The position numbers and the translations under genes were made by a program. A stretch of 64,000 nucleotides of DNA from NCBI GenBank assembly GCA_002269645.1, contig NIVC01000340.1:248001-312000 (forward strand). Reading direction: 5' to 3'. Source of the DNA: Macrostomum lignano. Taxonomy: Eukaryota. Below are positions 3,296 to 57,722 of the stretch, in pieces (positions within the stretch are counted from its first letter, which is position 1; each line of letters opens with the position of its first letter). The notes beneath the pieces are model-generated. The model saw only the letters and a program-made list of their open reading frames with translations. It was not told the origin of the DNA and made no database searches.

Positions 3296-3500
3296 TTGGG
3301 ATCTGGCTGGCTGGTCCAGCAACTGAGGATCTGGGAGGGTGGAGGTGGTCCAGCAACTGAGGATCTGGGAGGGTGGAGGTGGTCCAGCAACTGAGGATCT
3401 GGGAGGGTGGAGGTGGTCCAGCAACTGAGGATCTGGCAGGGTCCCAGCCCAGCAACTGAGGATCTGGCAGGGTCCCAGCCCAGCAACTGAGGATCTGACA
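3296..3500 (-). repeat. Dispersed minisatellite family A (core CCAGATCCTCAGTTGCTGG on gene-sense strand), copy 1
   Basis: ~7 cores with variable spacers, ending ~60 nt upstream of the PPP1R7 ATG. Confidence 0.95.
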
Positions 3501-3907
3501 GAAATGACAGAATACCCGAATCAAGAGCAGCAATCGATCTGGTAAAAAACTTGCTAAATAACAATCTACTAGAAGCAACTATCTATCAATTAAAAATGAC
3601 CCTTTAACACACTAAAATAAACAACTATAAACAGGAATCGCATCATGCATAAGAAATGACAAACAAACATATCGTGTTTTATCTTAGAAATGGAGAAAGA
3701 TTATCAGTTATGAATAATAACTTACAGCAGAAATATTTGACATTGTATTTTTGATTATTAATTTATTAAACGTATTGATGAAATATGATACAATTTATCA
3801 TTAATTAGGTCACGCTGACTAATTAGTAATCAATTAATTAGTTCTATCATGCTATATTAGCATGGTTTGTAAATGCCGTGAGCACAACCTCAAACAGTGC
3901 ACTCAGC

Positions 3908-5511
3908 TCAATCACCAGACGATGAGCTGCTCGAAGAGTCACTGCTCATAGTTTCAACTTGCTCAGCGGATGCACCAGCTGTTGGTTGAGCTTGAGCAGT
4001 TGAAGAGGCTGCAGATGAAGCAGACATTTGCTGCGGATATTGTTGTTGCTGTTGCTGCTGCTGCTGTTGTTGCTGTTGCTGCTGTCTTCCAGCAGCGGCG
4101 GCGGCAGCAGCGGCGGCAGCTGCAGCAGACAAAGAGGCCACCTCTTCAACAATACCCGGCTGAAAGTTGCCGTGCTCATCGACGTGCTTGAGCAGGCCTC
4201 TGGCCATCTCGTTGGCGGTCGGGTAGGGCCGGCGCGGATCGCCGAGGCCCCAGCCGAGGGGCGCCATCACGCCGTTGCTGGCGCTGATTTTGTGCGCAAA
4301 TTTGACCAACTCCTCAGAGTCAGCAGGGTTTTGACAGGCGGTTTGCAGCGATTCTAATTTCTGACGCGAGTAGAATATCGCTACCTGGGATTGGGGTGGC
4401 GGGGAGCGAGTGTACATAAATTGCACTGTCTAGAATAGCTGTGATAGTTATTGGTCGAGAGCGTGAGTAAACAGTCTAAATGGCTCTTATTGGTTGGGAG
4501 CGACTGTACCCTCCTAGAATGGTTCTGATTGGTCAAGAGCAAGTGTACACTGTCTAGAAAAGCTGTGATTGGTCGGGAGCAAATGTACACTGTCTAGAAA
4601 GGCTGTGATTGGTCGGGAGCAAATGTATACTGTCTAGAATGGCTGCGATTGGTCGGGAGCAAATGTACACTGTCTAGAAAGGCTGTGATTCGTCGGGAGC
4701 AAATGTATACTGTCTAAAAAGGCTGTGATTCGTCGGGAGCAAATGTATACTGTCTAGAAAGGCTGTGATTGGTCGGGAGCAAATGTATACTGTCTAGAAT
4801 GGCTGCGATTGGTCGGGAGCAAATGTACACTGTCTAGAAAGGCTGTGATTGGTCGGGAGCAAATGTATACTGTCTAGAAAGGCTGTGATTCGTCGGGAGC
4901 AAATGTATACTGTCTAGAAAGGCTGTGATTGGTCGGGAGCAAATGTATACTGTCTAGAATGGCTGCGATTGGTCGGGAGCAAATGTACACTGTCTAGAAA
5001 GGCTGTGATTGGTCGGGAGCAAATGTATACTGTCTAGAAAGGCTGTGATTCGTCGGGAGTAAATGTATACTGTCTAGAAAGGCTGTGATTGGTCGGGAGC
5101 AAATGTACACTGTCTAGAATGGCTGTGATTGGTCTGCAGCAAGTGCCTTACCGACAGTAATCGATCAGCTTCCATTAGCTGCCGCTGATGCTGACCAATG
5201 GCCAAATCCTGCTGATCAATAAGAGCTCGCAGCTGATTGGCTTTCTCGTGCAGCTGCTGCTGTTTGGCGGCCTGATCGCGCAGTCGGTGCAGTTTAGCCT
5301 CGCGCAAACGAAGCTGCTCAACTAAGGCTTCGCAGTTGAGTTCTAGAGGCTGCTGCTGCTGCTGCTGCTGACCGGATGCTGAGCGGTCCGAAGTGCTGCA
5401 TTGTTCTCGAGTTGCTAAAGCCTCGAAAAGAGCTTTAGATAATAGTTCGATGTCTTCAAGCACTGACAGCATCTTTACTTTGGTGGACGTGGATAGAGCT
5501 AGAGAAGACAT
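3908..5511 (-). CDS. MED4: Mediator subunit 4, two exons (5511-5152, 4384-3908)
   Basis: N-term STKVKMLSVLEDIELLSKAL, coiled coil, and the conserved SEELVKFAHKISASNGVMAPLGWGLGDPRRPYPT motif. GTAAGG donor and CCCAG acceptor join in phase 0. Poly-A/poly-Q/Ser-rich tail. Confidence 0.92.
4430..5135. repeat. 40-bp minisatellite filling the MED4 intron (TGTCTAGAAAGGCTGTGATTGGTCGGGAGCAAATGTACAC)
   Basis: ~17 tandem copies. Confidence 0.97.
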
Positions 5512-5694
5512 GACCTATGCGGCATAAACCAACATTGACAATAATTAGTTACCGAAAATGGAACAGTCAATCTGAAATCACTAATTACATTCTATTTTGT
5601 GCTAGAATACCCTCATAATTACTTTTTAATCTGATTATCTGTAAATATAATCTATCGAATAGTAGGCTTTCTTAGTCTAATCGATCCATCTCAC

Positions 5695-8555
5695 AACTAA
5701 CTGATCTATGGGATAATCTACACCCACTTCATAACTGATCTATGGGATAATCTACACCCACTTCATAACTGATCTATGAGATAATCTATACCTATTTTAT
5801 AACTCATCTATGGGATAATCTATACCTATTTTATAACTCATCTATGGGATAATCTATACCTATTTTATAACTCATCTATGGGATAATCTATACCTATTTT
5901 ATAACTCATCTATGGGATAATCTATACCTATTTTATAACTCATCTATGGGATAATCTATACCTATTTTACAACTCATCTATGGGATAATCTATACCTATT
6001 TTATAACTCATCTATGGGATAATCTATACCTATTTTATAACTCATCTATGGGATAATCTATACCTATTTTATAACTCATCTATGGGATAATCTATACCTA
6101 TTTTATAACTGATCTATGGGATAATCTATACCTATTTTATAACTCATCTATGGGATAATCTATACCTATTTTATAACTGATCTATGGGATAATCTATACC
6201 TATTTTATAACTCATCTATGGGATAATCTATACCTATTTTATAACTGATCTATGGGATAATCTATACCTATTTTATAACTCATCTATGGGATAATCTATA
6301 CCTATTTTATAACTCATCTATGGGATAATCTATACCTATTTTATAACTCATCTATGGGATAATCTATACCTATTTTATAACTGATCTATGGGATAATCTA
6401 TACCTATTTTATAACTCATCTATGGGATAATCTATACCTATTTTATAACTCATCTATGGGATAATCTATACCTATTTTATAACTCATCTATGGGATAATC
6501 TATGCCCATTTTACAACTCATCTATGGGATAATCTATACCTATTTTATAACTCATCTATGGGATAATCTATACCCACTTCATAACTGATCTATGGGATAA
6601 TCTATACCTATTTTATAACTAATCTATGGGATAATCTACACCCACTTCATAACTGATCTATGGGATAATCTAAACCTATTTTATAACTCATCTATGGGAT
6701 AATCTATACCTATTTTATAACTCATCTATGGGATAATCTATACCTATTTTATAACTCATCTATGGGATAATCTATACCTATTTTATAACTCATCTATGGG
6801 ATAATCTATACCTATTTTATAACTCATCTATGGGATAATCTATACCTATTTTATAACTCATCTATGGGATAATCTACACCCACTTCATAACTGATCTATG
6901 AGATAATCTACACCCACTTCATAACTGATCTATGGGATAATCTACACCCACTTCATAACTGATCTATGGGATAATCTACACCCACTTCATAACTGATCTA
7001 TGAGATAATCTACACCCACTTCATAACTGATCTATGAGATAATCTACACCCACTTCATAACTGATCTATGAGATAATCTACACCCACTTCATAACTGATC
7101 TATGAGATAATCTACACCCACTTCATAACTGATCTATGGGATAATCTACACCCACTTCATAACTGATCTATGGGATAATCTACACCCACTTCATAACTGA
7201 TCTATGAGATAATCTACACCCACTTCATAACTGATCTATGAGATAATCTACACCCACTTCATAACTGATCTATGAGATAATCTACACCCACTTCATAACT
7301 GATCTATGGGATAATCTACACCCACTTCATAACTGATCTATGGGATAATCTACACCCACTTCATAACTGATCTATGGGATAATCTACACCCACTTCATAA
7401 CTGATCTATGGGATAATCTACACCCACTTCATAACTGATCTATGAGATAATCTACACCCACTTCATAACTGATCTATGGGATAATCTACACCCACTTCAT
7501 AACTGATCTATGGGATAATCTACACCCACTTCATAACTGATCTATGGGATAATCTACACCCACTTCATAACTGATCTATGGGATAATCTACACCCACTTC
7601 ATAACTGATCTATGGGATAATCTACACCCACTTCATAACTGATCTATGAGATAATCTACACCCACTTCATAACTGATCTATGAGATAATCTACACCCACT
7701 TCATAACTGATCTATGAGATAATCTACACCCACTTCATAACTGATCTATGGGATAATCTACACCCACTTCATAACTGATCTATGAGATAATCTACACCCA
7801 CTTCATAACTGATCTATGGGATAATCTACACCCACTTCATAACTGATCTATGGGATAATCTACACCCACTTCATAACTGATCTATGAGATAATCTACACC
7901 CACTTCATAACTGATCTATGAGATAATCTACACCCACTTCATAACTGATCTATGAGATAATCTACACCCACTTCATAACTGATCTATGGGATAATCTACA
8001 CCCACTTCATAACTGATCTATGGGATAATCTACACCCACTTCATAACTGATCTATGGGATAATCTACACCCACTTCATAACTGATCTATGAGATAATCTA
8101 CACCCACTTCATAACTGATCTATGGGATAATCTACACCCACTTCATAACTGATCTATGGGATAATCTACACCCACTTCATAACTGATCTATGGGATAATC
8201 TACACCCACTTCATAACTGATCTATGAGATAATCTACACCCACTTCATAACTGATCTATGGGATAATCTACACCCACTTCATAACTGATCTATGGGATAA
8301 TCTACACCCACTTCATAACTGATCTATGAGATAATCTATACCCATTTTATAACTCATCTATGATAATCTACACCCACCTCATAACTGATCTATGGGATAA
8401 TCTACACCCACCTCATAACTGATCTATGGGATAATCTACACCCACCTCATAACTGATCTATGGGATAATCTACACCCACCTCATAACTGATCTATGGGAT
8501 AATCTACACCCACCTCATAACTGATCTATGGGATAATCTACACCCACTTCATAAC
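5695..8555. repeat. 34-bp minisatellite of ~2.9 kb between eIF3h and MED4, two subtype blocks
   Basis: ATAACTCATCTATGGGATAATCTATACCTATTTT dominates ~5790-6870; ATAACTGATCTATG(G/A)GATAATCTACACCCACTTC dominates ~6870-8550. Confidence 0.98.
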
Positions 8556-8851
8556 TAATCTAAATGAAAATAAGCAAGTCAAAATTTCTTTTTCAGCTCA
8601 CTAATCACTAATCGAACAAGCTTCGGCAGAACAAAGAAACCGAAGGTTGAACTGCATTTCAATTTCTTTTCAGTCGCAATTTCTATTTTAATTTTTGCCT
8701 TCTTTTGTCATTTCAACTGAAACAGAATCGGCTTGAAAATTGAGCTGTAAAATTCTCAATTTTTTAAGCAAGCTGCAGTCCTGTGGATCGAATGCAACGA
8801 ATTTATCAATCAAAGCCTACACCAATTATTATCATCAGAGTCCAGCTGAAC

Positions 8852-11800
8852 TCAATTGAACTGGATACCCTCAGCCAGCATGAGTTTGCCGTAGGACTGT
8901 CCAACAGTCTCCAGCAGTTCGCTAGTGAACTGGTGCAGCTGGGCCGACACCAGCACGGGATCGAGGGCCACTGGCGGATTTCCAATCTTAGGCAGCTTCG
9001 ACTTGTCGATGGCGTCCTCGCTGAGAGGCTCTTCGCCGCGTTGGGCTCGCTGCTGATTCTCGTAGACTATCTTCATCTTCTGGTCCTGGGTCACGGGATT
9101 GATTGTGTTAGGGTCACGTGATAGATTGTGTGAGGGCCACGTGATTGATTATGCGAAGGTCACGTGATTGATTGTGTGAGGGCCACGTGATTGATTATGC
9201 GGGGGTCACGTGATTGATTATGCGGGGGTCACGTGATTGATTATGCGGGGGTCACGTGATTGATTGTGTGAGGGCCACGTGATTGATTATGCGGGGGTCA
9301 CGTGATTGATTATGTGAGGGCCACGTGATTGATTGTGAGGGCCACGTGATTGATTATGCGGGTGTCACGTGATTGATTGTGTGAGGATCACGTGATTGAT
9401 TATGTGAGGGCCACGTGATTGATTATGTGAGGGCCACGTGATTGATTATGCGGGGGTCACGTGATTGATTATGCGGGGGTCACGTGATTGATTATGTGAG
9501 GGCCACGTGATTGATTATGCGGGGGTCACGTGATTGATTGTGTGAGGGTCACGTGATTGATTATGCGGGGGTCACGTGATTGATTGTGTGAGGGTCACGT
9601 GACTGCTACTTGAGGGTCACGTGACTGCTACTTGAGGGTCACGTGATTGATTATGTGAAGATCATGCGATAAATAATGTGAACATCAAGTGACGGATAAT
9701 GTGAAGATCATGCGATGCATAATGTAAAGGTCATTTGTAGGCAATTAGGATTATAAAAATAATTAGCGAAACACCCGCATACCTGAAGCGCCTTCTCATA
9801 CTTCTTATACGATCGTTGATAATTAAGATATTTGGAGGACTCTTGCAGAATCACTTCGCAACCAGTCGACAGAGACTTCATCTGCCTCTCGAGCTGGCTG
9901 CCCATAGCCAGGCTCAGGCCGGAGAATGCGTTACTAGCGACGCTGTCCTCTAGCTCAGCTAGCAGTACATTAGCCAGGTGACTATTGCGAATAATCACGG
10001 GCAATTCTTGCACTAAATTAGCCTGATTAACCATCAGCTCTTTCATGCGCTGCTGATTCACATTGTCCTCATCGCTCATCAGCTTCACCAGCGCCGGGGA
10101 CAGGCGGAATGCGCGAAATTCCAGCTGACCGCGGCTGGTCTTCAGCGGATTGTACACCAGAGCAACGGCGTCCAGTACACCCACCTGGAATTAGGTGAGA
10201 CTTGAACAATTTATATTTTACTTAGGCTTTTGTACTTAGTTAACTCATGGAGAAACATGCAGTTCGAATGCACTTTTAAATCACATTTCCAGTTAGAGAA
10301 TAATGCACTTTTAATAATCTCTAACTAGAGAATCATGTACTTTTACGAGTAATAATCTCTAATTAGAGAATCATGCACTTTTGATCATATCTAATTAGAG
10401 AATCATGCACTTTTGATCATCTCTAAATAGAGATTCATGCACTTTTGAATAATCCCTAATTAAAGAATCATGCACTTTTGATCATCTCTAAATAGAGATT
10501 CATGCACTTTTGAATAATCCCTAATTAGAGAATCATGCACTTTTGATCATCTCTAATTAGAGAATCATGCACTTTTGATCATATCTAATTAGAGAATCAT
10601 GCACTTTTGATCATATCTAATTAGAGAAGCATGCACTTTTGATCATCTCTAATTAGAGAATCATGCACTTTTGATCATATCTAATTAGAGAATCATGCAC
10701 TTTTGATCATATCTAATTAGAGAATCATGCACTTTTGATCATCTCTAATTAGAGAATCATGCACTTTTGATCATCTCTAATTAGAGAATCATGCACTTTT
10801 GATCATCTCTAATTAGAGATTCATGCACTTTTGAATAATCCCTAATTAGAGAATCATGCACTTTTGATCATATCTAATTAGAGAATCATGCACTTTTGAT
10901 CATCTCTAAATAGAGATTCATGCACTTTTGATCATATCTAATTAGAGAATCATGCACTTTTGATCATCTCTAAATAGAGATTCATGCACTTTTGAATAAT
11001 CCCTAATTAGAGAATCATGCACTTTTGATCATCTCTAATTAGAGAATCATGCACTTTTGATCATATCTAATTAGAGAATCATGCACTTTTGATCATATCT
11101 AATTAGAGAATCATGCACTTTTGATCATATCTAATTAGAGAATCATGCACTTTTGATCATATCTAATTAGAGAATCATGCACTTTTGATCATATCTAATT
11201 AGAGAATCATGCACTTTTGATCATCTCTAATTAGAGAATCATGCACTTTTGATCATCTCTAATTAGAGAATCATGCACTTTTGATCATATCTAATTAGAG
11301 AATCATGCACTTTTGATCATCTCTAAATAGAGATTCATGCACTTTTGAATAATCCCTAATTAGAGAATCATGCACTTTTGATCATCTCTATTAGAGAATG
11401 ATGCTCTTTAAAAATCTTGAATTAAATAATCACACGATCTAAAATCTCACATTACTAATAAAATGACCAAATTAGTTACTAAACACACCTGATAGTGGAA
11501 CTGCGATTCCACAAACTCTTTAGTAAGAAACTCGGCCCCAGCGGAGCTCTGGTACCAGCCAACAGTCAGATAGTCGGCATTGAGCTGGCGAAAATTCTTC
11601 TGTATATCCAGCTGATACTTGGCCGCGTCAAATTCGGCAACTGGCACAATGCCAAAGCCGCTATTGGCCGCCTCTTCGTCGTCGGATTGGCGAGGAAACG
11701 GGAAACAGTTGGTGATCTCCAGGCGGGTGTCCTGGACCAGACCGAACAGTAGTCCCTGGAGCAAATGGAAACGGTTTTTGTATTAAATACGATTTTCTAC

Positions 11801-12902
11801 TAATGAAGACTACTATGAGTAGGCAGAAGGGACATTAAGTTTCCAAAAAGGTGTTGTACAGTTCATGATTTACTGAAGTTACTGAAGCACATGATTTTAG
11901 GGAATAAAATTAAAGGCCGCTTAAGGACACTATCATGCATATTAATTTAACTAAACAGTGTGCCAATTTTTGGTCTAGTTCAATTATTCCACTGGTATAT
12001 TTAGCGCCACAGGTGAGATTTTAGCGCCATATGTGGGTTTTAGCGCGATAGTTAAGAATTTAGCGCCACAGATGATACTCTAGCGCCATAGTTGAGAATT
12101 TAGCGCTATAGGTGAGTTTTAGCGCCATAGTTGAGAATTTAGCGCCATAGGTGAGTTTTAGCGCCATAGTTAAGAATTTAGCGCCATATGTGAGTTTTAG
12201 CGCCATAGTTAAGAATTTAGCGCCATATGTGAGTTTTAGCGCCATAGGTGAAATTTTAGCGCCAATGGTGAGATTTTAGCGCCATAAGTGTGATTTTAGC
12301 GCCATAGTTAAGAATTTAGCGCCATAGGTGAGAATTTAGCGCCGCAGGTGAGAAATTAGCGCCGCAGGTGAGAAATTAGCGCCTCAGGTAAGAATTTAGC
12401 GCCGCAAGTGAGAAATTAGCGCCATAGATAAGAATTTAGCGCCGCAGGTGAGATTTGAGCACCGCAAGTAAGACTTTAGCACCACAGGTGAGATTCTAGC
12501 GCCGAAGGTGAGAAATTAGCGCCATAGGTGAGAATTTAGCGCCGCAGGTGAGAAATTAGCGCCACAGATGAGATTTACGGCATATCGGCATACATCAATG
12601 ACTACAACTCTCACCTGAACAATCCTATTACCGCTCATCTGCTCCTCGTGAAAGTGTTTAGCAATTTTCAGCACTACAAGGCCTTCCATGACAACTTGTT
12701 GAACGCTGCTAGCGTCCTCGTCGTCAATTGCCGGAGCGGAGGCGGCCGCAACGGCGGCGGCGGCAACGGAAGCAGCGCTCGGCTGCGGCTGCTGCGAATG
12801 GCTGCCACCGCCGCCATAGCCTCCGTGACCGTGGCCGTGGCCGTGACCGTAACCGTAACCGTGACCGTGCTGATACGGCCTTCGATGATGGGAGTAGGAC
12901 AT
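8852..12902 (-). CDS. EIF3H: Translation initiation factor 3 subunit H, four exons (12902-12615, 11755-11489, 10184-9783, 9085-8852), 396 aa
   Basis: VQQVVMEGLVVLKIAKH, QGLLFGLV..RLEITNCFPFP, VGWYQS, VALVYNPLKTSRGQLEFRAFRL, IIRNSHLANVLL, C-term GEEPL...GKLMLAEG. All introns GT-AG, phase 0. Confidence 0.93.
9090..9720. repeat. 23-bp minisatellite in eIF3h intron 3 (GTCACGTGATTGATTATGCGGGG)
   Basis: ~25 copies, each with a TCACGTGA palindrome; array abuts the acceptor. Confidence 0.96.
10300..11400. repeat. 32-bp minisatellite in eIF3h intron 2 (TAATTAGAGAATCATGCACTTTTGATCATCTC)
   Basis: ~33 tandem copies. Confidence 0.97.
11995..12570. repeat. ~20-bp minisatellite in eIF3h intron 1 (TTAGCGCCATAGGTGAGAAT)
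   Basis: ~28 copies. Confidence 0.96.
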
Positions 12903-13324: not shown

Positions 13325-13740
13325 TAACCAATGATAAAAAAATTGTCGGGAGAGTAAAGGAAAGTTTGGGGCAACTCCAGCCAATGAGTGTGGAGCTTTG
13401 GCAGAGAAGGGAGGAAGATGTGTAAGACCATTACAGCCAATGAGAGCGAAGCTTGAGGAGCGGGAGAAGGAATATGTTTAAAACCATTACAGCCAATGAG
13501 AGCGAAGCTTAAGGAGCGGGGGAAGGAATATGTTTAAAACCATTTCAGCCAATGAGAGCGAAGCTTGAGGAGCGGGGAGGAAAATGTGTAAAACTATTTT
13601 AGCCTATGAAAGCGACGTCTCAGGAGGGGGAGGGAATGAAAAATGATTAAGACCATTTCAGCCAATGATAGCGGATATAGGGGAGAGGGGGACGGAAAAT
13701 GAATAGGACTATTTCAGTCAATAGTAGCAAAGCTTGGACC
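13325..13740 (+). repeat. Degenerate ~56-bp tandem repeat carrying CCAAT boxes, between TMEM205 and eIF3h
   Basis: AGCCAATGA at ~13379, 13436, 13492, 13548, 13660, plus degenerate copies. Confidence 0.85.
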
Positions 13741-13792
13741 TATTTTCAAAAAGAGAAATTATTAAACTTTCGATGCCTTCGTGAAAACAATC

Positions 13793-14326
13793 CTAACTAG
13801 ATTTTTTCACAGGAGTAGCATTTGAATTATCAGTTGGCAAACTGAAGCGCAACAGTAGCAGACGCAGATAAACAACGCTAATGCACATTTGCGCCATATT
13901 AATGGCCATACTGCAGCCGTGAAGTTTACGAAAACTTGGCGATTTAGCGTTCATAGCTCTGGTGACAGCTGGGCCCAGTACAAACTGGTGAGTTGCCGCC
14001 AATACTGTTGCCATTAGCAACGCGCCAGCATATCTGACGCCTGACGATTGCGGTAAAATAGCCCGATAACGAATAAGAAATATTAACAACAGACCCGAGT
14101 AAAGCATTGTCTGCACCATGAAGTACTTCGGAAGTAGTACACCCTGTACTTCTTTAAAAGTCTCAATATTAACGTTGCGAAATAAAGTTGGCCCGCTGAC
14201 CAGAGTCATCCAGAATTGCGTGCCTAACAAGAGAGCCCAGGTGAACAGGTGAACAGCATCAGTCCATGGACCGACGCTGCTAACATTGCCACCGATTCTC
14301 TGTTGCTGCTGCTGCTGACTGGGCAT
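13793..14326 (-). CDS. TMEM205: Transmembrane protein 205 (DUF4149), single exon, 177 aa
   Basis: VHLFTWALLLGTQFWMTLVSGPTLF...FKEVQGVLLPKYF and FRKLHGCSMAINM match the TMEM205 pattern; four hydrophobic segments. Confidence 0.85.
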   Translation of the reverse strand: MPSQQQQQQRIGGNVSSVGPWTDAVHLFTWALLLGTQFWMTLVSGPTLFRNVNIETFKEVQGVLLPKYFMVQTMLYSGLLLIFLIRYRAILPQSSGVRYAGALLMATVLAATHQFVLGPAVTRAMNAKSPSFRKLHGCSMAINMAQMCISVVYLRLLLLRFSLPTDNSNATPVKKSS

Positions 14327-15117: not shown

Positions 15118-16040
15118 TCCAGGCAACTGAGGATCTGGGAGACTGGCCCAGCAACTGAAACTCTATGAAGCTGTCCCAGCAACTGGGGATCTGGGAGGCT
15201 GCTGGCTCAGCAACTGAGTATCTGGGAGGCTGGCTCAGCAACTGACATCTGTGAGGCTGGCCCAGAAACTGAGGATCTGAGAGGCTGGCCAGGCAACTGA
15301 CATATGTGAGGCTGGCCCAGCAACTGAGGATCTGGGAGGCTGGCTCAGCAACTGACATATGTGAGGCTGGCCCAGCAACTGAGGATCTGGGAGGCTGGCC
15401 CAGCAACTGAGGATCTGGGAGGCTGGCTCAGCAACTGAGGATCTGGGAGGCTGGTGGCTCAGCAACTGATGATTTGGGAGGCTGGCCCAGCAACTGAGGA
15501 TCTGGGAGGCTGGTGGCCCAGCAACTGAGGATCTGGGAGGCTGGTGGCCCAGCAACTGGGGATCTGGGAGGCTGGTGGCTCAGCAACTGATGATTTGGGA
15601 GGCTGGCCCAGCAACTGAGGATCTGGGAGGCTGGTGGCCCAGCAACTGAGGATCTGGGAGGCTGGTGGCCCAGCAACTGGGGATCTGGGAGGCTGGTGGC
15701 TCAGCAACTGAGGATCTGGGAGGCTGGTGGCCCAGCAACTGGGGATCTGGGAGGCTGATGGCTCAGCAACTGAGGATCTGAGAGGCTGCTGGCCCAGCAA
15801 CTGAGGATCTGGGAGGCTGGCCCAGCAACTGAGGATCTGGGAGGCTGGCCCAGCAACTGAGGATCTGGGAGGCTTGCTCAGCAACTGAGGATCTGGGAGG
15901 CTGGTGGCTCAGCAACTGATGATTTGGGAGGCTGGCCCAGCAACTGAGGATCTGGGAGGCTGGTGGCCCAGCAACTGAGGATCTGGGAGGCTGGTGGCCC
16001 AGCAACTAATGATCTGGGAGGCTGGCCTAGTAACTGAGAA
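15118..16040 (-). repeat. Dispersed minisatellite family A, copy 2 (24/27-bp units)
   Basis: CCAGCAACTGAGGATCTGGGAGGCTGG on +; lies between the POT1-like stop and the TMEM205 start. Confidence 0.97.
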
Positions 16041-16187
16041 TCTGAGGGGAGGGGGTTGACGATGACCCATAAACTAAGAATTAAGGAGGGTGATAGCCAA
16101 AATGATCAGATCAAATGAGAAAGCACTTGTCTAGCTAACAAACAAGGAAACAGACGACACAATGGAACAATCTCTAAAGTCCGTCAA

Positions 16188-18199: not shown

Positions 18200-19220
18200 A
18201 CTAAGTTGGCCATTTTATTTTTTTAATTGAAATATATGCAAAAATCATTGAGCAAAATTTATGTATCAAACTAAGCATCATCAACTCTGCTCTGGATGAT
18301 TTGCTTGAATTGGCTTTATCTGGACATGGATGATGTCAAAGGAAAAAGTGAAATGTGCAACACTATATTCTGCACTGATCCTTTGAATCTGATTAACAGA
18401 ATGATAGCATGTTGTCAAGTGAGTATAGATGATGGCACATTGATAAAAGTTGACATTGATAGCAGAGTCAACTTCTTGAAGATCAGCCTACTATATGCCA
18501 AAAGCAGAAGGTATATGCCTGAAGGTGTATCTTTATCCATTGTAAAGATAGGAAGTTCACTAATTCCTGCTTGCCATTGTTAAATCTGTTTCTGATTCCT
18601 ATAAGCTATAGCAGATCATAAATCATTTTTATCTGCAAAGATTTTTATTCTGTGCAGCAGTTGACATGAAAAGTTCTAATGCAATCCTGTGATTTTAGTG
18701 CTGCAGAACCATTTATCTATGACTACAAGATCATTTTTAAATCCAGGCCAAATGAACATACTAATACAGCTGCACCTATTTGGTATGACTAATCAACTAT
18801 TTGAAGAACTAGACATTTAAATACAAGCATTCTACAATCATCAAATTAGCACCAATAACTAGCTAGCTCAGATTGGTTTTGGAGACCATAGCAACACAGT
18901 AAGAAATCCTATGTTGCTTCTGCAATTTAAAAGCACTTTGCTTTGACATTGAGTATGTATTGAGACCTAAAGAATTGTCATGGCATTTGAAGAAGCCTGT
19001 CATGATCTTGGAATCCACATCATTCCAAAAGTCTATGCTGCTTTTGACCACATTTGTCTAGTTTTTGAATATGTCCAATCTAAGTGGAAAACCCAAGAAA
19101 GTTGAAACTGCATACCATGATTTCAACAAAATATGGCAATACTTTAGACTGATTTTCATTATCAATCATATATAGATTGACTATCCAAATGTGTTGGTGC
19201 ATATTGCTATTGTCATGTTT
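18200..19220 (+). pseudogene. Decayed DDE transposase, Transib/RAG1-like type
   Basis: Collinear fragments across frameshifts and stops: KVDIDSRVNFLKISL (~18446), FLLAIVKSVSDSY (~18564), AVDMKSSNAIL (~18656), AFEEACHDLGIHIIPKVYAAFDHI (~18983), VETAYHDFNKIWQYF (~19101). Confidence 0.55.
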
Positions 19221-41433: not shown

Positions 41434-41476
<43 letters not shown>

Positions 41477-47400: not shown

Positions 47401-50400
47401 ATCTCAACCCAGGGAATTACCCATCTCACCCTGAGAATCGCCCATTTCACCCCTGAGAATCACCCATCTCATCCTGAGAATCGCCCACCTCACCCTGAGA
47501 ATCGCCAATCTCACCCTGAGAATCGCCCATCTCACCCTGAGAATCGCCAACCTCACCCTGACAATCGACCATCTCACCCTGAGAATTGTCCATCTCACCC
47601 CTGAGAATCACCTATCTCACCCCTGATAATCATCATCTCACCCCTGAGAATCACCTATCTCCCCCTGATAGTCACCATCTCACCCTAAGAATCGCCCATT
47701 TCGACACCACCGCAGGCGGCGCAGCCAGCGACGACAGCGACGAAGAATTCCACGACGCCGAAGAGAATTTGGGCCTGGAGGAGAACCAGCAGGTTATCAA
47801 GATCAGCCTGCCGAATACGACACCGTCTGCCGCCTCAGCTGGCGGACTGTCGACCTCGCCGACTGATCAGGGCGTCGCCGCACCCGGCGGTTCATCTTCC
47901 AACGCGTCACCTGGCGGCGGTGGAGTATCCGACATCAACGCTGCCAACAAAGAGGCCTTCGCTGATGATTACGAATCGGACGTGTCCTACGAGGAGGACG
48001 AAGAGGAGGTCAAGGCCAGGCGTCGGGACAGTCGGCAGCTGAAGGTTTGTTGCACCCGTTGAAGCTGGTCTGCACAGAAATCGCTCATTACTGACTTGAC
48101 AATTGTTCTGCATGTGTCTAGTTGGGTTCGATCTTGTGTAATAAAAAAAACCCCTTGCTTCTCAGAATTTCTCTTCTCCCTCCCAGAGTGGCCATTCTTC
48201 CTCCCAGAATCCCCATTCTCCCTCCAAGAATCGCCCTCCTCCCTCCCAGAATCGCCCTCTTCCCTCCCAGAATCGCCCTCTTCCCTCCCAGAATCGCCCT
48301 TCTGCCTCATAGAATCTCTCTTCTCCCTCCCGAGAATCGCCCTTCTCCCTCCCAGAGTCGCCCTTCGCCCTCCCAGAGTCGCCCTTCTCCCTCCCAGAGT
48401 CGCCCTTCTCCCTCCCAGAGTCGCCCTTCTCCCTCCCAGAATCGCCCTTCTCCCTCCCAGAGTCGCCCTTCTCCCTCCCAGAATCGCCTTTCTCCCTCCC
48501 GAGAATCACCCTTCTCCCTCCCAGAATCGCCCTTCTCCCTCCCAGAATCGCCCTTCTCCCTCCCAGAGTCGCCCTTCTCCCTCCCAGAATCGCCTTTCTC
48601 CCTCCCGAGAATCACCCTTCTCCCTCCCAGAATCGCCCTTCTCCCTTCCAGAATCGCCCTTATTCCAAAAGTCGCCCTAAATAACGCCCAAATTATTTTT
48701 AAACTTGAAAGCATAAATAAGGAATGTCGCTGTTTTTGCCTATTTTTGAAGCAAAATTTGTACATATACGAGCCTGACAATGTGAAAAATCTATGGCCAA
48801 ATCATAATAATTATGATTTTTTAATCAGCTTCAGTTTGCATGTTGAGTTACGAGTTATATCAAAGCTGTCAGCACTTCAATAGAGACTAATCGCAATGTT
48901 ATTAATGTTAATATTAACAATATTATTCCACAATTCCTTACCAAATGCGCAGGTGATTCTAAACAAGCGATCACAGCCGAGCATGCGAAAGCAGAAACAG
49001 CAACAGCAGGAGCAGCAACAGCAGAGACTATCCGGCATCAGTCAGGATAGCACTAAGTCAGCCGTAGCCACTCGCCCATCCTCTTCAATCCGGGTGCGGC
49101 GCTCTGCGATACCTGAGCGGCCTAATTACAGTTTGAACCTGTGGAGCATCATGAAGAACTGCATCGGCAAAGAGCTGAGCAAGATACCTATGCCGGTGAA
49201 CTTTAGCGAACCCCTGAGCATGCTGCAGCGCATCACTGAGGAACTGGAGTACTCCAACTGTTTAGACAAAGCTGCTCAAGCTGCCGATCAATGGGAGCAG
49301 TTAGCCTACGTTGCTGCCTATACAATTAGCGCTTACTCCACTACTACTGTTCGAAGTGCTAAGCCCTTTAATCCGCTGTTAGGCGAGACTTACGAATTCG
49401 ATCGGACTGAAGATTTAGGCTGGAGATCGCTGGCCGAACAGGTAACTGGGTCGATTTTTTATGCATATTTTCAACTATGATTTATTACTACTTTTTCTGG
49501 ATTGTTTCGTGATGGGTTCGTAAAATCTCGTTTTTTGTGCCTTTAATAAACTACTATCGTAGTATAGTGTCTCTAGCAACTAGTCTTGCAGCCCTAGAAA
49601 CCAGTTTAGTGGCCCTAGCAACTAGTTTAGCGCTCTTAGCAACTAGTCTAGCATCTCTAACAACTAGCCTACGAGCCTTGTACGGCGCTCCTACGTGCCA
49701 GCGGCCCAGGTTCGATTTCAATTGCTGTCACATTAGTTCGGGGCTAAATTGAAATTGAAGGCACAATGCTGCTGTACACTCCTGTGTCAGTGGGTGCCTG
49801 TGCATATAGAAGATTCTGGTTAGGGGTAAAGCGATTTTTAAAATAATAACCATTTCTAATTTATATAAAGCACTTATTAATTAAAAGTACACCACTAGCT
49901 ATAGATATTTACTCAATCATTTTGAAACTAATCTGCAGGTGAGTCATCACCCGCCAGCTGCCGCATTTCACGTTGAAAGCAAAGCGGGCTGGACAACCTG
50001 GCAAGAGTTCACAATGTCCAGCAAATTTCGCGGCAAATACCTGTCAATCATACCGCAGGGCGTTGCCCATCTATTATTTAAACAATCGGGCAATCATTAC
50101 ACCTGGCGTAAGGTGACCAGCACAGTGCACAATATTATTGTTGGTAAATTGTGGATTGATAATCACGGCGATATGGATATTGTTAATCATACGACAGGTA
50201 ATATATAAAAAATTATGTGGAATTCTGCTATAAAAATGTGTATGTTTAATACAGGCTACTGTTTTTGTAAAGTTCAATACTCCAATACGCAAATAGGTTG
50301 AAATAATAGCATTAATTAATAAGTAGCCTAGTGGTTAGAGCGTCGGACTCACGACTGGAAGGTCGCGGGTTCGATTCTCGAGACCCACTCGAAACAATTT

Positions 50401-52948
50401 GTGTCCTTCAAAAGACACTTAACTCTGCATTGCATCTCAGTTCACCCAGCTGCAAAATGGGTGCCAGCATTAGCTGGGATAATTGAGGGTGTGTGGCGAC
50501 CCCTCCCCCCAGTTCTTGGACTAAAAGCGGCTGAGCTGTCGATTAAATATCTGCCTAATTATAGAGCCCCGGGTTTTGATCGCTTATAATTACAATCATT
50601 ATTATCTTATCACAACACAAAAACTATATGCGATATAGCCTACTCAAATCATAGGAATCAGTAGGCATATAACGAGTTTTATCGTTAAATTGAAACATAA
50701 TCCTTAAAGGTTACGTCATTTTTTAAATATTTCGAAACTTATTTGAAACTTTTTACCCTTTTCTTTTCTTAAATTAGGCGATATCTGCCGCCTCACCTAC
50801 AAGCCGTATTCTTATTTCTCGCGTGAGACGCCGCGTAAAGTCACTGGCGTCATTACCGACAAAACTGGCGTCACTCGTTACGTCATCACTGGCACCTGGG
50901 ACGACCTAATCGAAGGTGCTCGCGTATTAAAAGTTGACGATAGCAAGGCTAAGCAGGTGGCCGAGACTAAACCAGCTGTGGTTCTGTGGAAGCGCAATCC
51001 AATCCTGCCCAATGCCGAACGAATGTACAACTTTACCAAGTTCGCTATGGAGCTCAACGAGCCGGAGGAAGGCGTTGCGCCCACCGACTCTCGACTGCGA
51101 CCGGATCAGCGACTGATGGAGGAAGGACGCTGGGACGACGCCAACAAGGAGAAGGTCAGGCTGGAAGAGAAACAGCGAGCTAAACGGCGTCAGAACGAAG
51201 CCGATGCTGAAGCCGCTTCTTCTGCTGGTAAGTGGGTTCTCAATATACTTTTACAGCGGATTGCTAATCTATCTCATTTGGTTTCCATGGAAGCGGATGG
51301 CTAATCTATCTTATTGAGTTTCAGTGAAAGCGGATGGCTAATCTATCTTATTGAGTTTCTGTGGAAGCGGATGGCTAATCTATCTTATTGAGTTTCAGTG
51401 GAAGCGGGTGGCTAATCTATCTTATTGAGTTTCAGTGGAAGCGGGTGGCTAATCTATCTTATTGAGTTTCAGTGGAAGCGGATGGCTAATCTATCTTATT
51501 GAGTTTCAGTGGAAGCGGATGGCTAATCTATCTTATTGAGTTTCAGTGGAAGCGGATGGCTAATCTATCTTATTGAGTTTCAGTGGAAGCGGATGGCTAA
51601 TCTATCTTATTGAGTTTCAGTGGAAGCGGGTGGCTAATCTATCTTATTGAGTTTCAGTGGAAGCGGGTGGCTAATCTATCTTATTGAGTTTCAGTGGAAG
51701 CGGATGGCTAATCTATCTTATTGAGTTTCAGTGGAAGCGGATGGCTAATCTATCTTATTGAGTTTCAGTGGAAGCGGATGGCTAATCTATCTTATTGAGT
51801 TTCAGTGGAAGCGGATGGCTAATCTATCTCATTGGGTTTCCATCGAAACGGATTGCTAATCTATCTCATTAGGTTGTTGAAGTGAATTGCTAAATTAATT
51901 TTTATCGTTAACGATTGCTAATCTGACGTTAATCAAAACTATGATTGGTATTATCATATTTGCTTAAACCAAAAACGATTTTGTCTGTGCTGTGTCATCG
52001 ATGCCTCAAACTACAGAAGTACATTATAGCTCAGAAACTTGTTTGAAAGCAACTAACTGTTTATGTGCTGAAACAACACGCTGTTTTAGATTGTGAACAA
52101 GATAGCAACGCCAATGCCTCAGGTAATACACGTATATAGTTTTAACAAAATGTGTCTAACTAACAGTTGTGCTGCATTTCTCACTTCCATTTATTACTTT
52201 AAGTAAGGTAAATTAATCTTTTTCAAATTGTTGTTTTACTAGCTGTTGTTGTCATAGTAAATTATTACCACAGTTAGATAAAATCTACCAACTAACAAAA
52301 CACTGGTTTTTTAAAAAAAACCATACCCAAAGTAGCGTACTTTAAGTAGCCTCATTAGTATAATTAAAATATCACTGTAACTGTAACAAACTCGTAGACT
52401 AATTAAGCCTACTTTATGTGCTCTAACTAGAATAATAACGAAAAAGCGCTCTAATCAAGTAACCCACAGGAGCCTACTTTTTAAGTAGTCTAATTAACAT
52501 AATGTTTAAAATAATCGCTGTAATAAATAACCCACAGGAGCCTACTTTCAGTAGTCTAAGTGGTATAATACCACAAAAAATCGCTGTAATCAAATAACCC
52601 GCAGGAGCCTACTTTAAGTAGTCTAAGTGGTATAATACCACAAAAAATCGCTGTAATCAAATAACCCGCAGGAGCCTACTTTAAGTAGTCTAAGTGGTAT
52701 AATACCACAAAAAATCGCTGTAATCAAATAACCCGCAGGAGCCTACTTTAAGTAGTCTAAGTGGTATAATACCACAAAAAATCGCTGTAATCAAATAACC
52801 CGCAGGCCACGGATCATCCGATCATCAGGCAGCCTGGTTCAAGCCCAAGAAGGATCCGATCAGTGGTGGCACAATCCACTGCTTCACTGGCGAGTATTGG
52901 GACTGCAAACAGCGCAGCGAATGGTCCAAGTGTCCCGATCTCTTCTGA
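40668..52948 (+). CDS. OSBP: Oxysterol-binding protein (OSBP/ORP4 type). Exons 40668-40786, 45793-45998, 46115-46380, 47037-47262, 47716-48044, 48953-49441, 49939-50197, 50778-51227, optional 52090-52122, 52806-52948
   Basis: PH domain ([31 protein letters not shown]), FFAT-like [52 protein letters not shown]|VSHHPP signature, [12 protein letters not shown]-term GEYWDCK..W..CPDLF. Confidence 0.95.
41225..42395. mobile_element. Penelope-like retroelement remnant: GIY-YIG fragment with inverted 3' tails
   Basis: Minus-strand [25 protein letters not shown] (41887-41636) and EALYIK..KP.LNKQ; ~355-bp inverted repeat 41227-41583 vs 42041-42395; ~90-bp direct repeat at ~41697 and ~41950. Confidence 0.85.
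42320..42362 (+). ncRNA. Hammerhead-ribozyme-like motif in the Penelope tail; inverted copy at ~41255-41300
   Basis: CTGACGA-T-GCCT/AGGC stem-GAAAC-ATG(C/T)C; stem I pairing not evident. Confidence 0.45.
46470..46915 (+). repeat. 23-bp minisatellite in OSBP intron 3 (AATCCGCCCTGAGATTCGTCCAC)
   Basis: ~18 copies. Confidence 0.95.
47350..47700 (+). repeat. 21-bp minisatellite in OSBP intron 4 (CATCTCACCCTGAGAATCGCC)
   Basis: ~15 copies running up to the acceptor. Confidence 0.93.
48170..48680 (+). repeat. 21-bp minisatellite in OSBP intron 5 (CGCCCTTCTCCCTCCCAGAAT)
   Basis: ~23 copies. Confidence 0.95.
49570..49670 (+). repeat. Short degenerate 21-bp repeat (CTAGCAACTAGT) in OSBP intron 6
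   Basis: ~5 copies. Confidence 0.7.
49670..49830 (+). mobile_element. SINE family B, internally deleted copy
   Basis: GTGCCAGCGGCCCAGGTTCGATT, GTCACATTAGTTCGGGGCT, AAGGCACAATG, GCTGTACACTCCTGTGTCAGTG. Confidence 0.65.
50323..50600 (+). mobile_element. tRNA-derived CORE-like SINE family C, copy 1
   Basis: A box TAGTGGTTAGAGC, B box GGTTCGATTC, then AAGACACTTAACTCT..CAG..CACCCAGCTG.AAAATGGG resembling the MIR/CORE domain; simple-repeat tail. Confidence 0.8.
51255..51870 (+). repeat. 37-bp minisatellite in OSBP intron 8 (GAAGCGGATGGCTAATCTATCTTATTGAGTTTCAGTG)
   Basis: ~16 copies. Confidence 0.96.
52410..52805 (+). repeat. 67-bp tandem repeat that includes the acceptor of the last OSBP exon
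   Basis: AATAACCCGCAG|G ends at 52604, 52671, 52738 and 52805 (functional). Confidence 0.95.
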
Positions 52949-53305: not shown

Positions 53306-53612
53306 GGGGGTCGAAGCTTAGTGGTCAGAGCGTCGGACTCACGACCAAAAGGTCGGGGGTTCGATTCCTGATCTCACTCGGAACAATTCGTCTCACTGAG
53401 CAAGACACTTAACTCTGCATTGCTTCAGCTCACCCAGCTGTAAAATGGGTGCCAGCATTAGCTGGGGATAATTGAGGGTGTGTGAGGATCCCACAGTCCT
53501 GGGACTGAACAGCCGTACGCAGCCTTCAAATGCGCCGCGCAAAATAGCTGCGGCTGAGCTGTCGGTTGCACATCTGCCCAATAGTACAGGTGTAATTTAT
53601 TATTATTAATTA
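53306..53612 (+). mobile_element. CORE-like SINE family C, copy 2
   Basis: Clearly homologous to the copy at 50323 (TCGGACTCACGA, CACTTAACTCTGCATTGC, GTGCCAGCATTAGCTGGG); (TTA)n tail. Confidence 0.8.
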
Positions 53613-54361
53613 TTGACATTATCTGTGTTGAAAGATTCCCGACTGTAGGGCAAATCTCACTGTGCATGAGTGAAAGGATAAATTGGTGTTAGCTTTGATC
53701 TATCTTTAACTATGGCAGTGTTTCTATTTTTATTCATTGCAGTGCATCCCTCTGACCGATTGCATATACGAATATGATAGTTATATATAACTGATCACTA
53801 ATGATTGACTTCTGTATTATCTGTTATCCGTGCACTAATGATATAATAAAGGTTTATTGTGTCTAAAAAACTGCATGTGCTTTTTGATTAATTTAACTAT
53901 TTATTGAAACAATAGGAATTGACCTTTCCATTGTATTCATTATTCTTGTCTATTAATAAATTGGCTTATTTTTTATTGGCATCCCCAGAAAACTACTTTG
54001 ATTGTCTTCTGTCTCTAAAACCACAGCGCACTACTAACAGCAGTGTCTTGAGACTTTTTTGTCCCGTTTTTGTTTTAATTTTCCGCCTTTTTTGTTAAAA
54101 CTACATTTATCGTTAAAGATCAGTAACCAAATTAAATTAAAAGTTTTCTCTGCTCTGCTATGCTGTGTGATCATGATTTTTGAACTAATAATAGTAGTAA
54201 AATTGCTACTTTACTACTGCTTTAAAGTAATGTAGCCGCTGACGAAATACACGATGAAAAAAAGAACGATTTGATTTTTTTGGTCTTTCAATTAAAACTT
54301 GTTTGTAATTATTTTTTATTTATACCTTTTTAGTTTCTTGTCTTTATTGTTTCTGGGTTTA

Positions 54362-54905
54362 TCACCAGCCTCCCAAATCCTCAGTTGCTGGGCCAGCCTC
54401 CCAGATCCCCAGTTGCTGGGCCAGCCTCCCAGATCCTCAGTTGCTGGGCCAGCCTCCCAGATCCTCAGTTGCTGGGCCAGCCTCCCAGATCCTCAGTTGC
54501 TGGGCCAGCCTCCCAGATCCCCAGTTGATGGGCCAACCTCCCAGATCCCCAGTTGCTGGGCCAGCCTCCCAGATTCCCAGTTGCTGGGCCAGCCTCCCAG
54601 ATTCCCAGTTGCTGGGCCAGCCTCCCAGATTCCCAGTTGCTGGGCCAGCCTCCCATATTTCCAGTTGCTGGGCCAGCCTCCCAGATTCTCAGTTGCTGGG
54701 CCAGCCTCCCAGATCCCCAGTTGCTGGGCCAGCCTCCCAGATCCCCAGTTGTTGGGCCAGCCTCCCAGAGTGTCAGTTGCTGGGCCAACCTCCCAGATCC
54801 CCAGTTGCTGGGCCAGCCTCCCAGATCCCCAGTTGCTGGGCCAGCCTCCCAGATCCCCAGTTGCTGGGCCAGCCTCCCAGATCCCCAGTTGCTGGGCCAG
54901 CCAGC
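54362..54905 (+). repeat. Dispersed minisatellite family A, copy 3 (24-bp CCAGCCTCCCAGATCC(T/C)CAGTTGCTGGG)
   Basis: ~22 copies ending ~70 nt upstream of the PSMB7 ATG. Confidence 0.97.
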
Positions 54906-54973
54906 CCCAAGATTCCGGATTACCTACTCACTAACCGTGTGTCGAACCTCGCACTCATGCCACTAAGTCTTCA

Positions 54974-56169
54974 ATGGCCATGCTAGAGGAGCCATCCTGT
55001 CCCGGATTTGTATTCGACAATGTCCTGCGCAATCAGCACCTGCTGGCGAAGTGCGGCGGAGGCAGCCAAGCTGACGCCGCCGCCTCTTCAACCTCGGCGC
55101 TGCCGCGGGCCAAGAAGACGGGCACCACCATAGTTGGCTGCGTATTCAATGGCGGCGTGGTTCTGGGCGCCGATACGCGAGCAACGGAGGGCAACATTGT
55201 GGCCGACAAGGACTGCAGCAAGATTCACTACATATCGGACAGGATCTACTGCTGCGGCGCTGGCACCGCCGCCGACACCGAAATGGTTACTAGGCAGATT
55301 TCGGCTCAAATTTGTCTGCACCGACTGTCTACTGGCCGGTTGCCGAGGGTGATTACGGCCAAGCAGCTGCTCAAGGATTACCTGTTTAGGTAATCCTCTC
55401 TTATTAATTGTGTTTTGGCTATACTGTGTGTTGGGTTGCACTTTCTTAGAAAGAAACACCCGGAGAACTTTAAATGTTGGTCAGAAATACGATTGACTGA
55501 CTGACTGACTGACTGACTGACTGACTGACTTGAGTGACTGACACTGACTGACTGACTGACTGACTGACTGACTGACTGACTGACTGACTGACTGACTGAC
55601 TGACTGACTGACTGACTGACTGACCTACTAATCAACTAACTCTAACTAACTAACTATCTAACTTACTTATTTACTAACCAACTAACTATCTAACTGCCCT
55701 CAGATACCAGGGCTACATCGGCGCCGCCCTAGTCATTGGCGGCGTAGACTACCAGGGTCCGCACCTGTACTCGGTGGCTCCCCACGGCTCGGTGGACTGC
55801 GCCCCCTACATCACCATGGGCAGCGGCAGCCTCGCCGCCATGGCGGTCTTTGAAAGCCGGTTCAAGCCGGATCTGGACCAGGGCCAGGCTGTCCAACTGG
55901 TCCGGGACGCCATCCTAGCCGGCATCTTCAACGATCTCGGCAGCGGCTCCAATGTTGACGTCTGCATCATCCGTCAGGACGGTGTTGAATACCTGCGGCC
56001 CTACCTGAGAGCCAATGAGAAAGGCCAGCGGGCGGCTGTCTACCGAGGCGGCAAGCCGGCTGTGCTGCGCACCGACCGCCGTCCAGTGCTGGCCGACATC
56101 ATCAGCACCCGGATCATCCGCGACTCCGGGGCCGCCCAGGCTGCTGGCGAGACGCCAATGGAAACTTGA
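54974..56169 (+). CDS. PSMB7: 20S proteasome subunit beta-2 (beta type-7), two exons (54974-55389, 55704-56169)
   Basis: Propeptide [10 protein letters not shown], catalytic KTG|[66 protein letters not shown]. Confidence 0.96.
55490..55695 (+). repeat. (CTGA)n microsatellite grading into CTAA(C/T) repeats in the PSMB7 intron
   Basis: Directly visible. Confidence 0.95.
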
Positions 56170-56274
56170 TTGATGGTTCAGACTGAAACCAATATGACTA
56201 AGTGTTGAAACATATCCCCGCTTGGTTTCACAATCCCAGGCTTCATGGGGCTGGGGTTGTGAATATTTGAGGGA

Positions 56275-56575
56275 TATGACAGTATAAGGATTTATGATTG
56301 AGGATGTGAAGATTGAGGATGTCAAGATTGGGGATGTGAAGATTAGGGATGTGAAGATTGAGGATTAGAAGATTGAGGATCTGAAGATTAGTGGTGTGAA
56401 GATTAAGGATGTGAAGATTGGGGATGTTAAGATTGGGGATGTGAAGATTAGGGATGTGAAGATTGGGGATGTGAAGATTAGGGATGTGAAGATTGAGGAT
56501 TAGAAGATTGGAGATGTGAAGATTAGTGGTGTGAAGATCGAGGATGTGAAGATTGGGGATGTGAAGATTGGAGAT
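56275..56575 (+). repeat. 15-bp minisatellite (GATGTGAAGATTGGG) downstream of PSMB7
   Basis: ~20 copies. Confidence 0.93.
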
Positions 56576-57089
56576 ATACAGTTTAGGGCGACGTAAACTT
56601 GTGAACTTCTTAGAAATTATAAGGTCAAAGAGATTTGGGAAACAGAGCAAGTTTTCGGGGCTTTACAGAGCGCCCTCCCTCCTGCCCCCTCCCCCCGCCA
56701 GTTTAAGTTGTTATTCAGCAAAGCTCCTAATAGCGATACCAGTGTCGTATGTACTCTGCCTATAATTGTTTCCTAAGTACAACAAATGTTCATCTATGTA
56801 CTCCCTCTTAGTTTTCCGTATGTTACTTCAATTTTATTACGAGTAATATTTGAATTTTCTATTTACAATAGTTATCTTACTTTGTTGGTCGTAACAGTCT
56901 AAAAATAGAAAGTTCAAATAATTCATGTGCGTACTGCTAAATATATTTAAATATATTATATAATCAATAAATTCTCTCAGCGCTTAAGCTATCTAAATAA
57001 ATACTGCTAGCTTGAGCGAGTCTGTTCAAAACCTGCATTGAAAAGTTTCAGTCGAAACTGAAGTTTTTGTTTGTTTACCGTTTCTCGTT

Positions 57090-57722
57090 TCCTCAGTTGC
57101 TGGGCCGAGCAGGCTGAGTAAAAGCATGTGTCCCAGATCCTCAGTTGCTAAGCCAGCCTCCCAGATCCCCAGTTGCTGGGCCAGCCTCTCAGATGCCCAG
57201 TTGCTGGGCCAGCCTCCCAGATCCCCAGTTGCTGGGCCAGCCTCCCAGATCCCCAGTTGCTGGGCCAGCCTCCCAGATCCCCAGTTGCTGGGCCAGCCTC
57301 CCAGATCCCCAGTTGCTGGGCCAGCCTCCCAGATCCCCAGTTGCTGGGCCAGCCTCCCAGATCCCCAGTTGCTGGGCCAGCCTCCCAGATCCTCAGTTGC
57401 TGGGCCAGCCTCTCAGATCCCCAGTTGCTGGGCCAGCCTCTCAGATCCCCAGTTGCTGGGCCAGCCTCTCAGATCCCCAGTTGCTGGGCCAGCCTCTCAG
57501 ATCCCCAGTTGCTGGGCCAGCCTCCCAGATCCTCAGTTGCTGGGCCAGCCTCCCAGATCCCCAGTTGCTGGGCCAGTCTCCCAGATCCCCAGTTGCTGGG
57601 CCAGCCTCTCAGATCCCCAGTTGCTGGGCCAGCCTCCCAGATCCTCAGTTGCTGGGCCAGCCTCCCAGATCCCTAGTTGCTGGGCCAGCCTCTCAGATCC
57701 CCAGTTGCTGGGCCAGCCTCCC
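57090..57722 (+). repeat. Dispersed minisatellite family A, copy 4
   Basis: ~25 copies of the 24-bp unit. Confidence 0.97.

Follow-up and report, generated by a model that had tools for sequence, protein, structure and literature searches.

Two gene clusters and four arrays of one minisatellite family

The window analysed here is the whole stretch of 64,000 nucleotides between positions 248,001 and 312,000 of contig NIVC01000340.1 in the Macrostomum lignano assembly GCA_002269645.1, read on the forward strand, and the subject is a family of short tandem repeats of which the window contains four arrays, referred to as A1 to A4. The arrays are found among two clusters of same-strand genes. The minus-strand cluster, defined by open reading frames (ORFs), Pfam matches and protein searches, consists of an annotated gene without a Pfam match (referred to as geneX), a TMEM205-like gene, eIF3h, MED4 and PPP1R7. 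The plus-strand cluster consists of a DHDPS-family gene, which is probably HOGA1, the genes for a dynein light intermediate chain and an oxysterol-binding protein (OSBP), and PSMB7. The arrays form a dispersed non-coding minisatellite family that was previously undescribed, although of a known kind, and are made up as follows.

3296-3501, minus strand: A1, two units of 31 bp, three of 34 bp and one decayed unit
15118-16060, minus strand: A2, ~33 units with lengths of 28, 31 and 27 bp intermixed
54362-54909, plus strand: A3, 18 units, each of 28 bp, and decayed ends
57090-57736, plus strand: A4, one partial unit, one unit interrupted by ~20 nt and 20 units of 28 bp

The shared core, CCAGATCCTCAGTTGCTGG, was matched 72 times when the window was scanned with up to three mismatches, against 0.02 matches expected from shuffled sequences, and all matches fall inside four clusters (3316-3498 and 15120-16017 on the minus strand, 54373-54895 and 57133-57711 on the plus strand), which are the places where an earlier, sequence-only reading of this DNA had put them. 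Tandem Repeats Finder (TRF) bounds the same arrays at 3312-3501, 15123-16044, 54365-54902 and 57131-57723. A three-unit query run with nhmmer returned no further diverged copies in the window outside the four arrays, and solo copies of the core were found neither in the window nor in 61 kb of other M. lignano loci. The family takes up 3.5% of the window.

Cut at a fixed anchor, the arrays resolve into head-to-tail units of 28, 31 and 34 bp plus a few of 27 bp, with 6 to about 33 copies per array. Each unit consists of a 19-bp core and a spacer, so that the spacers are 9, 12 or 15 bp long and not 24, 27 or 30 bp as had been stated. The sense strand of each 28-bp unit carries three CAGs and the palindrome GCTGGGCCAGC, in agreement with the up to three YAGs and the palindrome described earlier. 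CpG is absent from the four arrays (0 in 2,243 bp, with ~207 expected from their C and G content), and the observed/expected ratio for the whole window is 0.66.

Head-to-tail units within the range of 10-100 bp, a presence at several loci with unrelated flanks and a non-coding nature place these arrays among the dispersed minisatellites, and the unit sequence was not found in the literature searched. A scan of a metagenome collection with the core gave 26 matches on soil contigs; these are considered chance or bacterial matches because they are single-copy and form no arrays, and were set aside.

Orientation and position of the arrays relative to genes

The genes that matter for the placement of the arrays are listed below.

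2258-3235, minus strand: PPP1R7 (sds22), single exon, 325 amino acids
3908-5511, minus strand: MED4, coding sequence in two blocks, the intron containing a 40-bp array, and AATAAA at 3767
9708-12902, minus strand: eIF3h
13793-14326, minus strand: TMEM205-like gene (DUF4149), single exon, 177 amino acids
16188-17411, minus strand: geneX, annotated with 407 amino acids, A2 lying just 3' of its stop codon
54974-56169, plus strand: PSMB7, two exons (54974-55389, 55704-56169) separated by an intron that contains (TGAC)n
60923-62077, minus strand: G-protein-coupled receptor (GPCR) gene, the next solid gene after A4

A1 and A2 read in sense with the minus-strand cluster, and A3 and A4 in sense with the plus-strand cluster. 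The claim that the arrays share one orientation relative to transcription thus stands, with four of four arrays in sense with their local genes. Agreement of this kind has a two-sided p of 0.125 at best, and of 0.5 if A1/A2 and A3/A4 are counted as linked pairs, which bears out the caution, voiced at the outset, that chance agreement is not negligible with four cases.

A1 and A3 occupy comparable positions, both lying between a candidate poly(A) signal (signals here being predicted only) and the next ATG. A1 begins ~260 nt past the AATAAA of MED4 (3767) and ends 60 nt before the ATG of PPP1R7 (3235), and A3 begins 70 nt after an ATTAAA at 54291 and ends 64 nt before the first ATG of PSMB7, close to the 60-70 nt given for both genes by the sequence-only reading. 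A2 begins 127 nt past the stop codon of geneX (16188) with no poly(A) signal between them, the first AATAAA (15054) follows 64 nt past the array, and the ATG of TMEM205 lies 791 nt downstream of it. Because the array is near the geneX stop codon and the first AATAAA comes only after it, A2 probably lies in the predicted 3' untranslated region (3'UTR) of geneX.

A4 begins about 95-125 nt past the AATAAA signals of PSMB7 (56966, 56996) and is followed by an ATTAAA at 57744 and then by a dispersed element resembling a short interspersed nuclear element (SINE) at 57804-58005. Further downstream on the plus strand there are only two short ORFs that end in GT donors (59233-59306 and 59597-59662). 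The placement of every array between co-oriented genes accordingly holds for A1, A2 and A3, and for A4 no downstream plus-strand gene could be verified, the next solid gene being the GPCR gene on the opposite strand. Similarly, the view that A2 and A4 precede TMEM205 and a gene at 59233 survives in part: A2 does stand ahead of TMEM205, at a distance and with the geneX 3'UTR as its likelier setting, and A4 has nothing but the two short ORFs ahead of it. Rfam and tRNA scans of the window gave no matches.

The trans-splicing setting

M. lignano adds a spliced leader (SL) of 35 nt to the transcripts of about 30% of its genes by trans-splicing and also has operons, and its SL acceptor motif is [T/C]TNCAG (PMC8629364). 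A search with PSMB7 retrieved two RNA-seq contigs from other Macrostomum species, with 84% and 78% identity to the query and 82% to each other. The 5' ends of both contigs read ...CTGCGAAGACTCAATTTATTGCATG and then diverge, and this sequence is the 3' part of the M. lignano SL, its junction lying about 24 nt upstream of the PSMB7 start codon. The trans-splicing setting at which the sequence-only reading had guessed is therefore real: the host has an SL and operons, and in two congeners the M. lignano SL is present on the mRNAs of PSMB7. PSMB7 itself has two in-frame ATGs six bases apart (54974-54982), and the start of both related species aligns with the second (54980).

For PPP1R7, a candidate SL acceptor, cTGCAG at 3246-3241, fits the acceptor motif, lies 47 nt past A1 and ends 5 nt before the ATG; the protein search for this gene returned no close relative.

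Copies of the family at other loci

The TMEM205 protein has 100% identical matches on two contigs of the assembly (Mlig_3_7), the second of which (NIVC01000517.1, locus L033) carries another copy of the region that is about 96% identical in unique DNA. The first is NIVC01000340.1, whose locus L032 equals the reverse complement of window 3793-24326 at every base. L033 has counterparts of A2 and A1 in matching places and matching orientation (A2', 8346-9215; A1', 18870-19052). A2 and A2' differ by no mismatch and a single one-unit indel, and A1 and A1' are 99.1% identical, next to a unique spacer that is 97.3% identical. A1' and A2' are not insertions independent of A1 and A2. All other array families have also been kept in place in L033, some with strongly changed copy numbers: 84 (window 5698-8562) versus 10 (L033 16491-16841) for a 34-bp unit and 35 (window 10293-11409) versus 53 (L033 12924-14620) for a 32-bp unit.

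A fifth copy came from a search of 5.8 billion proteins with the sense-frame peptide of A4, which had one match, UniProt A0A1I8J1R5, an M. lignano 'ARL3' model. The C-terminal ~70 residues of this model are the repeat peptide, in a GATGCTCAG variant; the match to the Arf domain ends at profile position 136 of 174, and the last 38 positions are replaced by the repeat. The repeat tail is probably an annotation artefact and, since the Arf domain breaks off at 136 of 174, the underlying array would lie in sense behind an internal exon. As the query consisted of sense-frame peptides only, the orientation of the fifth copy is not independent evidence, and because the model belongs to the species of the window it says nothing on conservation; cross-species conservation of the array, considered on account of this match, was rejected.

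Three mutually related loci with TMEM205 paralogues (L034-L036, 61 kb) contain no CAGTTGCTGG, and the family is therefore not evenly spread. Nor is it the only dispersed one: an 18-bp (CCCCAGATAGCAAGCATC) and a 23-bp (CTTTTATGTTTGACATGGTGGCT) minisatellite stand side by side on two contigs (L033 2-694 and L034 15652-19221), so that other minisatellite families are dispersed too, and this pairing hints at a composite element. The proposal that most other array families are locus-specific consequently holds inside the window and breaks down beyond it, where the 18-bp and 23-bp families recur together.

Tandem repeats in the non-coding parts of the clusters

Tandem repeats account for 33% of the window, distributed over 32 arrays of at least 150 bp; for the M. 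lignano genome as a whole, the share of simple and tandem repeats is 15% (PMC5730564). MED4, eIF3h and the DHDPS-family, dynein chain and oxysterol-binding protein genes have arrays in their introns. All four spacers of the minus-strand cluster hold an array, and only two of the four hold the family of A1 and A2:

geneX-TMEM205 spacer: A2
TMEM205-eIF3h spacer: a 56-bp CCAAT-bearing array, 13378-13701
eIF3h-MED4 spacer: a 23-bp TCACGTGA array, 9088-9658, and a 2.9-kb array of a 34-bp unit
MED4-PPP1R7 spacer: A1

Once repeats are subtracted, the MED4-PPP1R7 spacer measures ~290 nt from poly(A) signal to acceptor, and the geneX-TMEM205 spacer ~940 nt from stop codon to ATG.

How the arrays may be explained

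The arrays are probably neutral, transcribed filler, one among the many tandem-repeat families in transcribed non-coding DNA. On this account, tandem-repeat families would pile up in the non-coding parts of same-strand gene clusters, and the present family would have found room in outron or intercistronic spacers, in 3'UTRs and, at least once, within a gene model. The arrays would have grown in place from short seeds, by slippage or unequal exchange, and would be transcribed in sense within pre-mRNAs, their RNA then being discarded with the outron or spacer or, as for A2, retained in the 3'UTR. They would have no sequence-specific job, and their common sense orientation would be due to chance or, at most, to a weak tolerance effect, since the sense strand is rich in C and contains no stop, ATG or donor signals.

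The positions of the arrays are mixed, with A1 and A3 after a poly(A) signal, A2 before the first one and the fifth copy after an internal exon. The palindrome had suggested a structured RNA, a candidate that was rejected because folding of the sense RNA did not differ significantly from that of shuffled sequences (z = +0.5, -1.6, +1.5 and -0.6). The neutral account also has a precedent in the same species, where repeats in the intergenic regions of operons have been read as neutral accumulation (Ustyantsev and Berezikov 2021, PMC8629364). The likeness extends to repeats between same-strand trans-spliced genes and to short repeat-subtracted spacers; in contrast to the present analysis, that study treats repeats in bulk, names no families and ignores orientation.

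Several observations sit less comfortably with filler. All four arrays are in sense although the two clusters have opposite absolute orientations, and A1 and A3 end nearly equidistant from an ATG (60 and 64 nt) with the same decayed end, CCAGCCAGCC. The stretch between A3 and the PSMB7 ATG is free of CAG, which makes the last CAGs of A3 the nearest ones upstream. Among 23 arrays, this family has the highest density of sense-strand YYYCAG (5-7 per 100 nt), and its pyrimidine-CAG motifs are similar to genuine 3' splice sites of M. lignano, an example being the cis acceptor of PSMB7, ccctcag|A. The core is identical throughout A1 despite differing spacers, a core-versus-spacer contrast that is partly circular because the core was defined as the shared part. 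Finally, A1 and A2 have changed little between the duplicated regions, whereas some neighbouring arrays differ up to ~8-fold in copy number. A general sense bias of acceptor-like motifs across arrays was ruled out, since YYYCAG-type motifs of the other arrays are split six in sense to six in antisense.

Among the alternatives, a mobile minisatellite, which a non-autonomous transposable element with a preference for gene spacers would carry or have seeded, is unlikely. The unit does recur at no fewer than five loci whose flanks are unrelated, two further minisatellite families travel jointly between contigs, and A4 lies 80 nt from the SINE-like element, of which the copies in L034-L036 lie ~90 nt from a different (CT-rich) array. 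However, a comparison of eight array flanks revealed nothing in common beyond a partial unit and no terminal inverted repeats, and the sequence linking the SINE-like element to the array is not conserved; adjacency of the two is in any case expected by chance, because a third of the DNA is arrays. A carrier in the form of a miniature inverted-repeat transposable element (MITE), a Helitron or a SINE was rejected at the four arrays for want of conserved ends, shared flanks or inverted repeats, and the mobile alternative that the sequence-only reading had offered finds no backing in the flanks. Dispersed euchromatic satellites and minisatellites, some of them carried by transposable elements, are well described (reviewed in PMC10048060) and resemble the present family in that one short-unit family is scattered as short arrays near genes; the difference is that the M. 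lignano arrays were searched for a carrier, a common flank or an inverted terminal repeat to no avail.

Pyrimidine-rich signals that are read in sense and separate the 3' end of a cistron from the SL acceptor of the gene that follows are found in Caenorhabditis elegans, as the outron (Ou) and intercistronic Ur elements, and in trypanosomatids, as polypyrimidine tracts. The arrays would be comparable if they acted as an RNA element that depends on orientation and belongs to outrons or intercistronic spacers: the pyrimidine-CAG tandem would attract factors for splicing or 3'-end formation, or would itself supply SL acceptors, and would so help to separate an upstream cistron from a trans-spliced downstream gene. 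The extent of SL trans-splicing and the operons of M. lignano (PMC8629364) are consistent with this, as are the SL about 24 nt before the PSMB7 ATG in two congeners, the placement of A1 and A3 between poly(A) signal and ATG, the 2-3 acceptor-like CAGs in sense per unit and the lack of CAG between A3 and PSMB7. Nevertheless, the putative operon has other spacers from which the family is missing, A2 and the ARL copy probably lie elsewhere than in spacers, PPP1R7 has a good acceptor of its own 47 nt past A1, the unit is not an exact match to [T/C]TNCAG and only four arrays are available. The Ou, Ur and trypanosomatid elements, moreover, are short, single, present at essentially every such spacer and experimentally required, whereas the M. 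lignano arrays are 190-940 bp long and occur at a minority of spacers. Such an element is quite unlikely. Its more specific form, a sense-only landing pad or insulator that would uncouple upstream 3'-end formation from SL addition, with the last CAG sometimes acting as an SL acceptor, possibly for PSMB7, is very unlikely.

It is just as improbable that the arrays are promoters or enhancers, that is, tandem putative transcription-factor sites driving the downstream gene. Variable arrays just upstream of coding regions are familiar from yeast promoter repeats and from human variable number tandem repeats (VNTRs), and A1 and A3 lie directly upstream of genes; the reverse complement of the core contains CAACTG, which resembles a Myb site (YAACKG) and an E-box variant. 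Neighbouring arrays do carry classic promoter motifs, CCAAT at 13378-13701 and TCACGTGA at 9088-9658, and 1-2 kb of upstream DNA suffices for reporter expression in M. lignano (PMC5730564). Against this, only ~60 nt remain after A1 and A3 for a core promoter plus 5'UTR. A2 and the ARL copy probably lie within transcription units, so that two of the five copies of the family differ in this from promoter repeats. The sense rule is also left unexplained by promoter function, because factor sites usually work in both orientations.

That the arrays encode a repeat protein is effectively refuted, for although A3 and A4 are open in all three sense frames and one UniProt model (A0A1I8J1R5) translates such an array, the 28-bp period is not divisible by 3, A2 has stop codons in every frame, and the single match among 5.8 billion proteins has the repeat in place of the end of a conserved Arf domain.

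Filler of the kind favoured above mostly illustrates a known trait, the crowding of tandem repeats into the spacers of trans-spliced gene clusters. Arrays of this kind break transcript assemblies and leak into gene models, as in UniProt A0A1I8J1R5, and the annotation pipeline for M. lignano bridged repetitive stretches within 3'UTRs (PMC5730564). If, on the other hand, the sense rule were true genome-wide, no earlier repeat element of a flatworm would have been both defined by sequence and linked to the processing of operons or outrons. The idea is cheap to test because M. lignano can be made transgenic and maps of its SL reads and poly(A) sites are public.

Other repeats of the region

Three arrays of the minus-strand cluster carry a recognisable motif in every unit. 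The array upstream of eIF3h (13378-13701) repeats CAGCCAATGAG, a CCAAT box, 5.8 times, an array in the MED4 intron (4467-5142) repeats GACCAATCACAG, a classic promoter motif, 17 times, and the array between eIF3h and MED4 (9088-9658) repeats TCACGTGA, a palindromic E-box, 25 times.

In the neighbourhood of the plus-strand cluster, a 14-bp unit (TTTGCTTGCCAAAC and its reverse complement) forms two inverted arrays ~560 bp apart (27171-27502 and 28062-28414) just upstream of the DHDPS-family gene. Between this gene and the one for the dynein chain, two minisatellite blocks (33414-33627 and 33834-34934) flank an interstitial (TAACCC)n tract (33627-33790) that is telomere-like. The blocks appear by eye to be reverse complements of each other, and the whole of 33414-34934 resembles a head-to-head junction of subtelomere-like repeats.

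Short dispersed elements of ~200-350 bp are found at 37282-37622, 50323-50525, 53315-53614 and 57804-58005, with copies in L034-L036 that are 71-86% identical. The last of these is the SINE-like element after A4, whose copies in L034 and L035 also lie ~90 nt from a CT-rich array.

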